A DNA stretch of 64,000 nucleotides from Dimorphilus gyrociliatus (GCA_904063045.1 CAJFCJ010000017.1:868001-932000); one strand, 5' to 3'. Counted from the stretch's first letter, positions 27,804 to 34,300 are shown. Notes: generated by a model from the letters alone, not told the origin. Numbers and translations: made by a program.

Positions 27804-28425
27804 ACTTGTATAACTTCTTATACAATATAAATAGGTAAACAAAATACAAACATGGAATTATTTATACTCAAGTTATTATTAATAATATCATTCATTATTC
27901 TTCTTTAAATTTTAGCATAGAACGTTGTATAAGCAGTTTGCGAAGATAGTAATAATAATAACTTTATTAATTGAGATGTTATTACTAAATTGATAGAATA
28001 AATAGTATTAACATTAAATAGCAGTATTAGAAGAAGTAATCTTAATTATGGTAGTAGAGTAATTAAAGATTGTTTAGTTTGTCGACCTAGTGCTTGTAAT
28101 AGTTACATAAATTGTGATCAAACACTCTTATAGTTAGGAAGATTAGCGGAAGTAGAATAAACGGGAAGAAAAGCAGAAAGGGTAAAAAGGACGAGAAGGT
28201 ATTAGGATATAATAGAAAGGAAAACGTAAATGAGTCAGTCAGGAAATGGTAGCCATATGAAAAAAAAATGAAAATTTCGAAACTAAAACATAAATATAAA
28301 AAATATATAAAACGAAGACAATGAATATAATAATAATAATAGTAACAAATAATAGTAATAATAATAGTAATAATAGTAATTATATAAAAAACACACAAGT
28401 GAAATATTGGAAGAAATCACGACAT

Positions 28426-28494
28426 TCACTGGTTGACGAGAATATTCTTTGCTCTCTTGTCAGCTACTCTAATGCGATTATCCAGCGATACGGC
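28426..28494 (-). CDS. SNAP25: SNAP25 alternative terminal exon b ([22 protein letters not shown])
   Basis: Long polypyrimidine tract and TTTAG acceptor, phase 0; aligns residue by residue with terminal exon a. Confidence 0.85.
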   Translation of the reverse strand, partial: AVSLDNRIRVADKRAKNILVNQ

Positions 28495-31374
28495 CTAAAC
28501 AAAAATAACGAAAAGGAAAATTTTAAAAGGGGAAGATCTATTATTCACGCAGTAGTTTATTAGCTCTCTTATTCGCCTCTTGAATACGTGTTTCGTTCGA
28601 CATGCCCTGTGAGAAGCAGAGAAATGCAAAGCAGAAAATTAATAGAAGCGTTAATCGATAGCGTAAATATATCATGTGCTGATTCCTTCCGGCAGTAATC
28701 ATTATGACAAAGGCCAGCAATTAACAAAGCGAAAATCTCTTGGAACAAGAGTAAAGAAGAAAAATTAAAAGAATAAAGTGCCAAACCTTCTGATTTATGC
28801 GGTCGATTTGTTTATTCTGCGATTCCAGTTCATTGCCCATATCCACAGCCATGTTCCTTAGATTTGATATCATACCACTAACTTCTCCCAAATTCTGTTC
28901 CATTTCATCCTCCCTTGCATCGTTAGTTATTCGAGTCACGTAATTACCAGACATTCCGGCTTGATTGTCGCCAACTATCATTCTTGGTCCGTTTGTGTTA
29001 ACCTATAAATAATTTACAAGTGATATTATCATTTTTTACTATATTTCCTATTATTAATATAATTATACATAATATTATTATTGTTATTAATGTTATTATT
29101 AGTAAGAGTATCAGTAGTAGTTTAAGTAGTAGTAATAGTATTATCTTTGGTAAAAAACAATTTCTTTGGTCAGAATTCTATTTTAATTCTTCCCTTCATT
29201 AGCCTGCTTCTTATGTGTCTATTTCTGCTAAGAACGACAAAGAAGGGGTAAACTAAATCAACTAAACTAACCTTTCCATCTTCATTCCCCTTCCAAGTAT
29301 CCTTATAAGCGGAATCTTTTTCGAAATTTTTACTCCTCTTCCACGGCAAGACGCATAGACCGCAACATTTTTCCATACCCTCCAAATTCTTTTCGGCATC
29401 TTTCATATCTTGATTAATCTGATCCATTCCTTCTTCGATCCTCTCCAATTGTTCTATAAGCGAATTTAATAAACTTAAAGCTAGTCTTTACTCAGAAATT
29501 TTCCACTCAAATAATTGCAATTAAACTAGAAAAAAAAAGGAATAAAACAAATCGTTCTTAATCAAAGATGATTGGAAAGCAGCTTATTTCCTAATCTGTC
29601 TAAGAATATCATACCCCCTTGAACTGCTAACGTTGCAATAGTATTCACCCCGGCATCTTGTGTCTGTATTTTTTGGTTTGTCAGTTTACACATACAAATA
29701 AAAAAGATAAAGATAAAAAAAAAAAGGAAAAATAAAAGGGATGGTTTTGCTATCAAATGCAGATCGAAATTGGAGAGTTTTTGCAGTTGACACCAAGATC
29801 AACGCAATGTACATATAAATTCGTTTAGAAAACGATAAAATATAACTAATAAGCACATAGAACTAAGAGCGGTTATCAAACAATACTGATACTATGAAAA
29901 ATATGAAAAACGACACTAATAAGTACAAACCAGAAAAAAAGGAAAAAAAAACATTTCATATAATAGATAAGAAAATCAAAAGATAAGAAATTAGGTGAAA
30001 AGGACAAGAAAAAGAAATTGATCTATGTCGATTATAATCCTTTTATAAACAATAGAACGCTTTCCAATCATCGATATCGTCAGAATTATCACTGTTCTTG
30101 TTATTGTTGTTATTCCTTTTATTGCTTGTCTGGCGTTTATTTTTTTTTTTTGTATCTAAGAAAAATTTTCAAAACAAACCTCCTTGTTCGTCCAACATAA
30201 CGAGCGTCCTAATTCCAGCATCTTTACTCTAAAAGGAAAAAATGCAACAAATACGAAAATAGACAAGTTACCAAAAGAGATATTGAACACACTCATCTAC
30301 AATTATAGTACATACTTGTTTATAATAAATACTATAGACAGAAAAAACATCTTCAACTTAGGAAACAAAGTATAAAAGTGAGAAATGTACGTAATTATAA
30401 TAGTAATAATAAAAAGAATAATACTATCGTAAATATTATACTTAATTAACAACACATTGGATTATTTATTACGTAATGGCACTTATTATTAGTTAAAAAA
30501 AATCAGTAGCATAGGCGAATAATCTAGCAAAACTATTGTATGTAAAAAAAGAAAAAAAAACCAAATAGGACAAAAAATTGATAAGTCACATGTAAATTAA
30601 TTATACGATCTCAAACAATAATACTTGTTCGCTATTCTCCAACAAAACAAAAAGAAAAAAAAAAGACAAACAATACACATAAGCAGTACTAGTTATGCAT
30701 AAAATATAATTTTAACTTACCTCCTCGCATAATGCCACCATGCGTCTCGTACTCTCCAAACTCTGTTTCGAAAAATGGCATTGATTATTTAGTATCTTTT
30801 CGTTAAAAAATTGAAATAAACAGGAGAAAAGTGGAGTTATCTGTTTAAACTTTTAAGTAATGAAACAATTATTAACTAAAGTTTTAAGATCGATGAATGT
30901 CAATTGACAAGAGACGCCGCTTGGTTAATAAAGCTTGAACCTGAATTGTTCCATTATTAATATCCAATTGAATTTGTTCATCTTCTGTAGGTGTTCGGAT
31001 TGGACGCTCCTCCTCATTTTCACATTGTTTTTCAGAGTAACTCATTACATCGACCGGCGACCGTTTTCATAGTTCGAATATTCGTACAGGGAGACGCCGC
31101 GCGCGAAAATTACAACGTCTAGACGATAGGCGGCGTTGGACACAGTCAGATCGATAGGCAAAACGCAGTGTAATTATGTAAAAATCGATTTCAAAGCGTC
31201 CGCCCATAAATCGACAGCGACTGTCATAATGTAGAAGGAGAACCAAAACGGGGTGGGGAGAAAGGAGGCGAATGAATGAATTGTACTAACCTCATCAGTT
31301 TTTGCATTCATTTGCATGTGAATGTCCATGGGACCAGTAGGGCTACCAGCAGTGGGGCTTTGTGGTTCCTCCAT
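28426..31374 (-). CDS. SNAP25: Synaptosomal-associated protein 25 with three alternative exon pairs; constitutive exons 30762-30721, 29453-29272 and 29002-28787
   Basis: Reconstructed [14 protein letters not shown] / [16 protein letters not shown] / [29 protein letters not shown] / [14 protein letters not shown]...[11 protein letters not shown] / [15 protein letters not shown]. All GT-AG junctions are phase-consistent, and the 42-nt and 49-nt exons match vertebrate SNAP25 exon sizes. Confidence 0.97.
28541..28606 (-). CDS. SNAP25: SNAP25 alternative terminal exon a ([21 protein letters not shown])
   Basis: CACAG acceptor, phase 0; closest to the canonical SNAP-25 C-terminus. Confidence 0.92.
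   Translation of the reverse strand, partial: GMSNETRIQEANKRANKLLRE
29567..30072. repeat. Perfect 14-bp intronic inverted repeat flanking SNAP25 49-nt exon B
   Basis: GATGATTGGAAAGC at 29567-29580 and its reverse complement GCTTTCCAATCATC at 30059-30072. Confidence 0.85.
29615..29663 (-). CDS. SNAP25: SNAP25 mutually exclusive 49-nt exon B ([16 protein letters not shown])
   Basis: TACAG acceptor and GTATGA donor. Same length and phases (0 to 1) as exon A, with DAG..T...L..QG conserved. Confidence 0.88.
30180..30228 (-). CDS. SNAP25: SNAP25 mutually exclusive 49-nt exon A ([16 protein letters not shown])
   Basis: TTTAG acceptor and GTTTG donor. The peptide is identical to vertebrate SNAP-25 residues 39-54 as recalled. 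Confidence 0.95.
30941..31045 (-). CDS. SNAP25: SNAP25 alternative N-terminal exon b ([35 protein letters not shown])
   Basis: ATG-initiated 105-nt open frame ending at CAG|GTTCAA in phase 0, which would join SLESTRR. A CpG-rich patch lies immediately upstream (about 31050-31210). Confidence 0.65.
31291..31374 (-). CDS. SNAP25: SNAP25 N-terminal exon a ([28 protein letters not shown])
   Basis: A CACAG acceptor precedes the ATG, the donor is GTTAG in phase 0, and the exon ends in ..TDE like canonical SNAP-25. Confidence 0.9.
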
Positions 31375-34300
31375 ATTGTTAGTCTGTGTATGAAAATAAA
31401 TGATAAAAACACAAAACTACATACATAATATATCTAAATAAAGACTTATTAAACCATCAAATTGCTTTACTTAGTTAAACGCTTCAGCCTTATCGAATAA
31501 TTTTTCCCTATTTATTTATTCAGAAACTAATTTCTGCATTATGATCAAGAAAAAAAAATTGACCGTCATATTGCTTTTCTTATTTATACAAATCGGTTTA
31601 TCGCCAATAGTTGTGGCTAAAACATGCTTTAACCTTTACTTTTATTCTACTCAATATTATTCCGCTGACTTCCTCATATAACAAACTGTAACGCAATCGA
31701 TTTCTTCTAGAGGAAGCCGAAAATTTCTCTTTAACAAAATTATCATTAATCCATCCATATCGGTTTATCTTATTCTCTTTTTTTTTTTTTTTTTCTCTTT
31801 TCATCCCTTTTCCTGCCTCCACTAACCGTCCCACCACCATTTACTCGGATCAATCTATCTATATCTTTTTCTCTGTCATTTACTCCCCCTCCTTTTTTTT
31901 TATAGTTTAATAAAAATGTCCTAAAAACCCAGCTGTCAAGGTAAAATAAAGATATATTACATAAGTGATTGTAAATATATATCAGTATAATATATTTATA
32001 AAAAAGATATTTTTCGCCTCTTCTCTTCTGCTATCTCACTCGCCCATTCACTCTTCCTCAATTACTGTCTTTGTTTCAAGAATTGAAAAGAAAAAAGATG
32101 ACAAGGCCGAAACTTTTTGGTGTATATTTCATTTTAGAACATTACTTAAAACAACCTTTTTATTGATTAGTCATAATCATGTATAAAAATATTAGAAAAC
32201 CATAAACTGTTGTATGAGTAATTAATAATACATGATTCATAAAATCATCATAATGTTCTTATGTGACACGTGGAGATATATCAATTGCAAACTGTTTTGC
32301 AAACGAGGTGATAGGATGAGAAAGAAGAAAACAAAATAAAATAAATTATTCCGGAGAAGATCATTCAAGCTAATAAACAATTGAAAATAAAAAAACAATT
32401 TGTATGTGTTTACAACAAGATCTATATATATTTTAGTGCCTTAGGAATGTTCTTCCAACAGCAATACTGCATTAAGACGTTTATATATATATATATATAC
32501 ATTCAGTACCAATATATATAGACTAATCCATAAAGATTTTATTGAAGAAATTGCGCATTCAATGTATTAAGACAGTTCTTGTCAACAGGCCAAAAACTAA
32601 ACAAATTGCATGCAATTGGTTTGTTAAAATAAAAAATGAAGAGATAGGAAGGGAGAGGTGGGATGAAAGGATTGAGGTACAAAAATAAAAACACAAACCC
32701 TCTTGAGAAAAGGCTCACTCTCCATAACGTTTTTTTTTCTGATTTTTTTTAGCTTACATCACCTGCTACATTGGGTTAGTACATGCAAAGATATATAATA
32801 AAATTCTATCAACTATAGATATATATATATATGTATATACTGAATAATAATATATTCTAAAAAATCGCCTACGTAAATTGATGCAGATTATAAAAATTAT
32901 ATAAACAGAGGAACCGAGCGACTGTTAATGGTAAACGGACCAGGAAAGACATCATAGCACTGAATTAGAACCAATTATTCTACGTTAATTCTCGTTAACA
33001 TCCACTAATTTTTATATTTAAACGATTTAATTATCATTTGAGACTATGAATTACCACAATCCACTTACGTTATAGCGAATTTAAGGGATTTAGAAGTAAA
33101 AAACCGCCTCCAAATCACTTGAGCGATATGGCTCCGATTTTTCTGTCCAATCAACAACCAGCTTACAGGAAAGAGTTATATTGGCCTATTAAACATTTTT
33201 GGCGCACATTTCACTTCATTCAAATTTCATGTTACAATTCTTTACAATTTTTTAAGGTGAAAAAAGGATAGTGATTTATAATTAACATTTATTTTCTTAT
33301 AAAACTGTACGCAGAATAAATTAGACTATGAATAAATTAATTACATTATCAACATTTAAAAAGGTATTATTCTCTTCTTATTATAATTCAGCAATTATAT
33401 AAAATTAGAACAACTTGCTCTTTAATAATGCAATCGGATCAAACGCGGGGAAAAAATATTTCCATAAGATACATTAATGGATAAATAAAAAGATACTCTA
33501 GGTATCTTTTAACATAGTTAATTCAATAAGTAAAGATTTAATCAAATGTAAATTTCGAACAAAAATCTCTTTTGTGTGTGTATCATTTACTTTCATTGAT
33601 ATTCATATCCTTTATTCAATTAAAAGAACACGTATAATGATTTTTTTTATTTGTTTTATCACCATATTCTTTTAATTGAAGGCTGTAAATCGTTAACTCT
33701 TTTACTTTATGCTTTATAGTTGCTTTGCATTTGCTTTATCCATATGAAAGATTATGCGAATAGCATGCAAATGGTGAATAATCTGAGAAGTAAAAATCAG
33801 TTTTCTCCCAAGTTCTCTCTCTTTCCTTTTTTAATTTATATTACAATCCAACGGTGAAATTGAGAGAAAAATGAGTTTTCTTTGATATAGTTTTTGCATT
33901 TCCTGCCTAATGAAATACTACTGAGTAAAAATTTTTCTCTTTGATTAGAAAAAGAATTGTCTTAGGAGAAGATTTATGGCATTTTTATGATTAATCAATG
34001 TAACGCGAAGTCTCTTTATTAGTTATAAATGTGACCTTAGAAATGTACTGTAAATTTTACATTTCTTAATCTTTATCAATAACTGCGAGATATTAGGAAA
34101 TATATTAGCGTATTCTAATTAACATCTGCAAATCGAGACTTACGGATTTTCCGATTTCCGAAATCGATTTCGCTTTCTTTCGGAATGTAGTAATTTTACG
34201 TGTTTAAACTTGCAGTCTATTGTTTGTTAAGTTTTATTTTGAAAAATCATATATTTTCTTATTAATTTTGACTGTAAGTTTTAATATTAATAAGAAGCAG

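Follow-up and report, generated by a model that had tools for sequence, protein, structure and literature searches.

Two complementary boxes in the SNAP-25 gene of Dimorphilus gyrociliatus are predicted to pair as a selectively maintained long-range RNA stem in the pre-mRNA. The gene lies on the minus strand of the 64-kb stretch of DNA that was analysed (GCA_904063045.1 CAJFCJ010000017.1:868001-932000, hereafter the window), and the stem would close a 478-nucleotide (nt) loop containing one of two alternative exons, exon B, together with its branch site, acceptor and donor. We consider it likely that this RNA structure is under selection. An added effect on exon choice, with the stem setting the ratio of exon A to exon B and the paired state biasing towards A, is our favoured reading, held with about even confidence. 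The broadest version, in which an ancient stem is the switch for Lophotrochozoa-wide mutually exclusive SNAP-25 exons rewriting the SN1 helix just before the zero layer, is tentative and, on present evidence, rather doubtful. The parts of the gene on which the argument turns are as follows.

30721..30762, minus strand: exon 2, constitutive, upstream of the A/B pair; 14 residues, AG/GT borders, the same segment being present in named SNAP-25 proteins.
30180..30228, minus strand: exon A, 49 nt (16 residues plus 1 nt); it encodes the canonical SN1 segment, and its acceptor has a strong tract rich in U.
30059..30072, minus strand: 5' arm of the stem (GAUGAUUGGAAAGC), named 'selector A' in a first-pass annotation of this DNA; its 10-nt block TGATTGGAAA is kept in a paralog on contig C19.
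29615..29663, minus strand: exon B, 49 nt (16 residues plus 1 nt); a divergent member of the lophotrochozoan B-type exon (xQDxGVKTI...QG).
29567..29580, minus strand: 3' arm of the stem (GCUUUCCAAUCAUC), named 'docking site' in the first-pass annotation; it ends 113 nt before exon 4, and its 11-nt block TCCAATCATCT is kept in the C19 paralog.
29272..29453, minus strand: exon 4, constitutive, the acceptor for both A and B; its translated segment reads (E)...NEDGK.
28787..29002, minus strand: exon 5, by sequence reading.

The exons were read by sequence (exon 2, A, B, 4, 5 and two last exons) and searched individually, not as a joined transcript. Exons A and B are equal in length, share the same phase and AG/GT borders, and encode homologous 16-residue segments, which we take to correspond to positions 39-54 in rat SNAP-25 and to run as far as the zero-layer glutamine. 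A length of 49 nt does not divide into whole codons, so the use of both exons, or of neither, would by simple arithmetic shift the frame. The peptide of exon A is identical in many annelid loci and proteins. Directly upstream of exon B the acceptor is A-rich; a U-rich tract and a branch-like site, CTGAC, lie farther up.

The 14-mer GATGATTGGAAAGC lies at 30072-30059 (minus strand) in the A-B intron, beginning at +108 past the exon A donor. The second arm, at 29580-29567 (minus strand), is the exact reverse complement of this 14-mer and begins at +35 past the exon B donor; the 478 nt between the two arms include exon B. Both the perfect 14-bp duplex and the enclosure of exon B had been claimed in the first-pass annotation, and both are borne out: the match is perfect over its whole length, has no other occurrence in the genome and is seldom equalled in shuffles, and a loop closed by the two arms must contain exon B along with its acceptor and donor. 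In the animal's own genome (77.9 Mb, 349 contigs), the 14-mer is found only at the two arm sites, and a pattern search of the window returned 2 matches, where 0.04 were expected by chance. An exact complement of 14 nt was reached in 1 of 200 dinucleotide shuffles of the two flanking introns. We also scored helices without gaps and tested them against shuffles, a measure that replaced whole-intron duplex folding, which had given meaningless global pairings; the observed score of 38 was reached by none of 100 shuffles (25.8 +/- 2.7). Since the 64-kb window holds three complex exact inverted repeats of at least 14 nt within 1.5 kb, the inverted repeat is notable for its location and not for existing. 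The odds of such a repeat falling exactly around exon B are roughly 1 in 100 to 1 in 200.

The predicted stem comprises 14 Watson-Crick pairs and one G-U pair, with a calculated duplex energy of about -24 kcal/mol. It is included in the minimum free energy (MFE) fold of 29450-30260 (reverse strand), the region for which the first-pass annotation had suggested folding, and its predicted pair probabilities are 0.97-0.998 across three sequence contexts. Taken over its full length, the region shows no excess of structure over shuffles (z = +1.17). In the MFE fold a possible outer helix, weakly supported and of low complexity, stacks outside the 14-bp stem; its two halves are listed here.

30103..30123, minus strand: 5' half of the possible outer helix, a purine-rich box of 21 nt, 81% complementary to 29532-29552.
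29532..29552, minus strand: 3' half of the possible outer helix, a U-rich tract, weak and of low complexity.

A search of the genome with exon 4 recovered two further SNAP-25 genes, giving three paralogs in all.

G000:C19:556511-559690 (L087): C19 SNAP-25 paralog, from the genome search; its exon 4 (C19:558011-558190) is 95% identical to that of the window.
G000:C9:1389753-1392932 (L088): C9 SNAP-25 paralog, from the genome search; its exon 4 (C9:1391253-1391432) is 82% identical to that of the window.

The C19 exons are those of the NCBI protein DgyrCDS11406 (P0267) of D. gyrociliatus. When the window gene is compared with C19, 75 of the 140 codons that specify the same residue differ, and the four-fold sites agree at only 16 of 38 positions, so that neutral sequence is near saturation; the divergence amounts to approximately 1.1 substitutions per site (Jukes-Cantor), with a Nei-Gojobori proportion of synonymous differences (pS) above 0.75. 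The introns of the two genes show no general alignment. Nevertheless, both arms are present, in the same order, in the homologous A-to-exon-4 intron of C19 (308 nt), with TGATTGGAAA 43 nt into the intron and TCCAATCATCT at position 225. When the C19 intron was shuffled, arm words of equal length were obtained in 10 of 5000 cases for TGATTGGAAA and in 3 of 5000 for TCCAATCATCT.

The two C19 boxes are likewise predicted to pair, in both the MFE and the centroid fold, forming a stem of 16 pairs with one bulge and one mismatch (-17.5 kcal/mol). A core of 8 bp is common to both stems. To this the window adds 2 outer and 5 inner pairs, while C19 adds 4 outer pairs past the one-base bulge and 4 inner pairs past the one mismatch. 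Two inner pairs of the window have both partners replaced in C19, one going from G-C to U-A and the other from C-G to A-U, and two of the outer pairs of C19 stand where the window has mismatches. This covariation comes from two sequences only, and the statistics are thin. Because both arms and their pairing have been kept in C19 despite the near-saturated neutral sites, with two double changes, the stem is probably under selection. The helix test itself is not permissive, since 16 of 19 A-to-exon-4 introns of other worms, taken from metagenomes (347-1259 nt), contain no helix better than shuffles. The other three (L032, L056 and L079) carry inverted repeats of 41-130 nt that resemble insertions of transposons or miniature inverted-repeat transposable elements (MITEs).

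How might such a stem act? It would tie the region just past exon A to the region ahead of exon 4, so that the exon A donor and the exon 4 acceptor would be separated by approximately 220 nt outside the loop in the paired state, versus 726 nt in the unpaired state. The median intron of D. gyrociliatus is 66 bp, and short introns are spliced more efficiently in this animal (PMC7854359). With a spliceosome best suited to very short introns, pairing of the arms should promote the joining of exon A to exon 4 and the skipping of B, and exon B would compete only on transcripts in which the stem is unformed or has been opened. We infer formation of the stem in vivo, a lowered use of exon B and a bridging role in the C19 gene, which lacks exon B.

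Several observations weigh against this account. In both C19 and C9, the stretch from exon 2 to exon 4 contains exon A but lacks exon B, and among the three Dimorphilus SNAP-25 genes exon B is kept only in that of the window. As C19 keeps the stem without exon B, the stem can be selected in the absence of that exon, and the conserved role cannot be only that of hiding it. In C9, both arms are missing from the 179-nt A-to-exon-4 intron, and so is the stem. At several conserved positions, exon B of the window does not match the B-type consensus, and a protein search with the C19 paralog's protein as query returned no Dimorphilus exon B product and, apart from the paralog, nothing above 79% identity. 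No significant stem surrounds the second exon in two metagenome loci that have two tandem 49-nt exons, the annelid-like L043 (67 of 100 shuffles as good) and the bivalve-like L049 (22 of 300 shuffles). The conservation and compensatory change for which the first-pass annotation had suggested looking are thus seen in the C19 paralog, with its two double changes, and are not seen as a significant stem in these two-exon loci. Equilibrium folding, moreover, leaves out co-transcriptional kinetics and proteins. Lastly, all four arms, in the window and in C19, have exactly the same CCAAT-box-like core TCCAATCA, and the 11-mer TTCCAATCATC occurs 107 times in the genome compared to 45 times for its reversed control, a mild enrichment of approximately 2.4x. 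The common core and the enrichment mean that a motif acting at the level of DNA explains part of the conservation.

Taken further, the last point would make the arms two inverted CCAAT-box-like sites of an intronic enhancer or an internal promoter, with their complementarity simply following from the motif. However, the complementarity extends well past the core, by 6 additional pairs in the window and 4 + 4 in C19, with different flanking letters in the two genes that include the two double changes. The 5' flank of the core presumably does not fit the purine-rich consensus of NF-Y, and we count this against such an element as well. On the other side, open chromatin is frequent in long introns of Dimorphilus: 944 intronic peaks from the assay for transposase-accessible chromatin with sequencing (ATAC-seq) lie in introns that are longer than non-regulatory ones (PMC7854359). 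Weighing these points, we regard a purely DNA-level element as distinctly unlikely. A chance match, a functionless neutral relic or a transposon with terminal inverted repeats would also yield two complementary arms. One complex exact inverted repeat somewhere in the window is expected, given that there are three, and the ungapped C19 helix on its own is not significant (35 of 100 shuffles). Against chance or relic stand the location-specific shuffle, with its single success in 200, the survival of both arms in a paralog with near-saturated neutral sites, and a joint chance of finding both arms in C19 of about 1e-6 if the arms are independent. Terminal inverted repeats of a transposon or MITE were rejected: the 14-mer occurs at two sites only, the DNA enclosed by the arms has no other match in the 77.9-Mb genome, and no direct repeat or target-site duplication is visible beside the arms. 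The interior holds a conserved and ancient coding exon, which speaks against both chance and a transposon. A search of Rfam gave no match at E <= 1 in 28300-31500 on either strand. Chance, relic and transposon are already disfavoured, and taken together we consider them very unlikely.

A further alternative accepts the stem and denies it the switch. Here, the stem would serve only as an intron bridge, bringing an exceptionally long intron closer to the approximately 66 nt for which the spliceosome is tuned, without any effect on the choice between A and B; exon B would then be constitutively skipped, decaying, or chosen by other means. This is consistent with the conservation of the stem in the B-less C19 gene, with the more efficient removal of short introns in Dimorphilus, and with an exon B that diverges from the B-type consensus and yielded no B-containing product in the protein search. 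However, any exon enclosed by a stem together with its acceptor and donor would be expected to be used less, and the 179-nt intron of C9, like 16 of the 19 worm introns (347-1259 nt), manages without such a stem. A bridge with no bearing on exon choice is, in our view, unlikely, and we retain as the favoured reading a selected stem that also biases splicing towards A.

The first-pass annotation had described the pair as docking/selector-type control, of the kind known from Dscam, 14-3-3 and Mhc. Part of this stands, in that the arm positions fit the 14-3-3 layout; what is not borne out is the competition that defines such control, no second selector having gained support. Exons A and B form a cluster of equal-length (49 nt each) homologous exons, whose one-at-a-time use is seen in isoforms of Physella and Pomacea, and the 3' arm lies in the last intron of the cluster, adjoining constitutive exon 4, and is conserved in C19. 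One selector for each exon is not found, the box after exon A being the only one supported. The candidate for a second one is the following.

29587..29596, minus strand: GAUUAGGAAA, a degenerate copy of the 5' arm and candidate 'selector B', which would pair locally with the 3' arm in a bulged hairpin of 9 bp.

In true Dscam/14-3-3 competition, the 3' arm would pair either with the distal box after A or with the local GAUUAGGAAA after B. Besides the positions, which fit a downstream-docking layout, this is suggested by GAUUAGGAAA itself, a degenerate copy of the 5' arm with no counterpart seen, by reading, upstream of the 3' arm in the intron of the B-less C19 gene; such a copy also fits the duplication model of PMC6071210. 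The local hairpin (29596-29587) is weak, however (-6.5 kcal/mol, with 499 of 2000 shuffles folding as well), and was rejected as not significant, and the long-range stem is predicted to occupy at least 0.97 of the ensemble. A stem looping out exon A was also rejected: the only pairing found was poly-U with poly-A, of low complexity and not significant (11 of 200 shuffles). We thus judge docking/selector competition very unlikely. Because the competition between selectors that defines such systems is not seen, the feature is best filed as a looping-out stem, or RNA bridge, and not as a docking/selector system.

The exon pair itself can be followed well beyond Dimorphilus. Named SNAP-25 proteins split into an A type (SK[DE]AGI[KR]TL...) and a B type (xQDxG[VI]KTI...), the proteins concerned coming from gastropods, bivalves, a chiton, the brachiopod Lingula and the nemerteans Lineus and Tubulanus, with the B type carried by named brachiopod and nemertean isoforms. 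The RefSeq isoform pairs of Physella and Pomacea differ solely in the 16-residue segment, the mollusc RefSeq isoforms using A and B one at a time, and intron-less metatranscriptome-like contigs carry either the A or the B type. On these protein sequences, the A/B exon pair is old. Exon B of Dimorphilus retains the B-type signature (Q2, V6, I9 and the terminal QG) and is more divergent than the others. The pair is annotated in many molluscan RefSeq isoforms, and no description of it was found in the literature searched.

A scan of metagenomes gave 80 loci, nine of them intron-less and resembling complementary DNA (cDNA); most worm loci have exon A only, and two tandem 49-nt exons are present only in L043 and L049. 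An arm-like word, TGATTGATTGGGAAAG, in L009 has no complementary partner and is probably there by chance. Scanning genome contigs returned only spurious archaeal and bacterial matches. A fragment from a close relative in Logan contigs (P0001) is 95% identical over exon 5. A third 49-nt exon variant (AKE[AG]GITTLVLLDEQG) is present at L049:1202-1250 and in isoforms of the bivalve Mercenaria (proteins P0206, P0241 and P0247), so that some molluscs seem to have a three-exon cluster at this place. On a 14-kb metagenome contig, exons 2, A and 4 of SNAP-25 are contiguous and intron-less (L005:1682-1954, JAAUYG010090905.1, protein P0182); this gene is either a retrogene or from an intron-poor host.

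Other features of the Dimorphilus genes deserve mention. In the window gene, the last coding exon comes in two alternative versions (28426-28494 and 28541-28606, minus strand). Past exon A, a purine-rich box (30101-30121, minus strand) is 76% complementary over 21 nt to the polypyrimidine tract of exon A (30230-30250); it may mask the exon A acceptor, is of low complexity and is absent from the MFE fold. In C19, the exon A donor lies within a near-perfect palindrome (GTACAACG.GCGTTGTA; L087:1191-1207), which the MFE and centroid folds both show as a hairpin of 7 bp with a loop of 3 nt and which may mask the 5' splice site.

How RNA pairing selects among mutually exclusive exons has been established in insects and for a small number of vertebrate genes. 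Its use for exon choice in spiralians is not covered in the literature searched. If the broadest version set out above is true, this would be, to our knowledge, the first RNA-structure-controlled mutually exclusive splicing outside arthropods and vertebrates. What the Dimorphilus gene offers is a short and clean stem, in compact introns, around an exon that alters the core of a synaptic fusion protein. The C19 paralog, with the stem and without exon B, constitutes a natural control, so that both putative roles, setting the A/B ratio and clearing long introns, are directly testable. In a genome of 78 Mb such a switch, if true, would be easy to test.

Several known systems resemble parts of what is described here. 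Conserved intronic box pairs of Drosophila are also long-range looping-out stems or RNA bridges, a class that modulates cassette exons as well as mutually exclusive ones. In long yeast introns of the RP51B type, internal stems shorten the effective distance from donor to branch site. The C19 stem is like these in enclosing only intron sequence, in a host that prefers short introns; organism and intron architecture differ, and the splicing effect in Dimorphilus is a predicted one only. The layout matches the downstream docking of 14-3-3, from 2011 work recounted in PMC4691838. There too, a box past the last variable exon and immediately ahead of the constitutive acceptor pairs with a box downstream of the upstream variable exon, looping out the intervening exon and bringing the donor near the acceptor. 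Dimorphilus differs in having one supported pairing, no competing selectors found and two exons only. In addition, the Dimorphilus stem also occurs in a single-exon paralog, the gene is SNAP-25, the phylum is Annelida, and the pairing is predicted from sequence.

The R1-R5 RNA bridges of human ATE1 (PMC7797038) likewise consist of conserved boxes hundreds of nt apart that flank an alternative exon, with covariation between homologs and predicted skipping of the enclosed exon. In contrast to Dimorphilus, ATE1 has several competing and ultra-long-range pairs that were validated by mutagenesis (PMC7797038), whereas Dimorphilus has a single stem whose conservation is shown only between paralogs of one genome. 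Within the gene family, the parallel is exon 5a/5b of vertebrate SNAP25 (PMC5740500), which are mutually exclusive exons in the N-terminal half of the protein as well. The vertebrate pair is another exon, covering the end of SN1 and the cysteine cluster, and the 5a/5b and A/B pairs arose independently.

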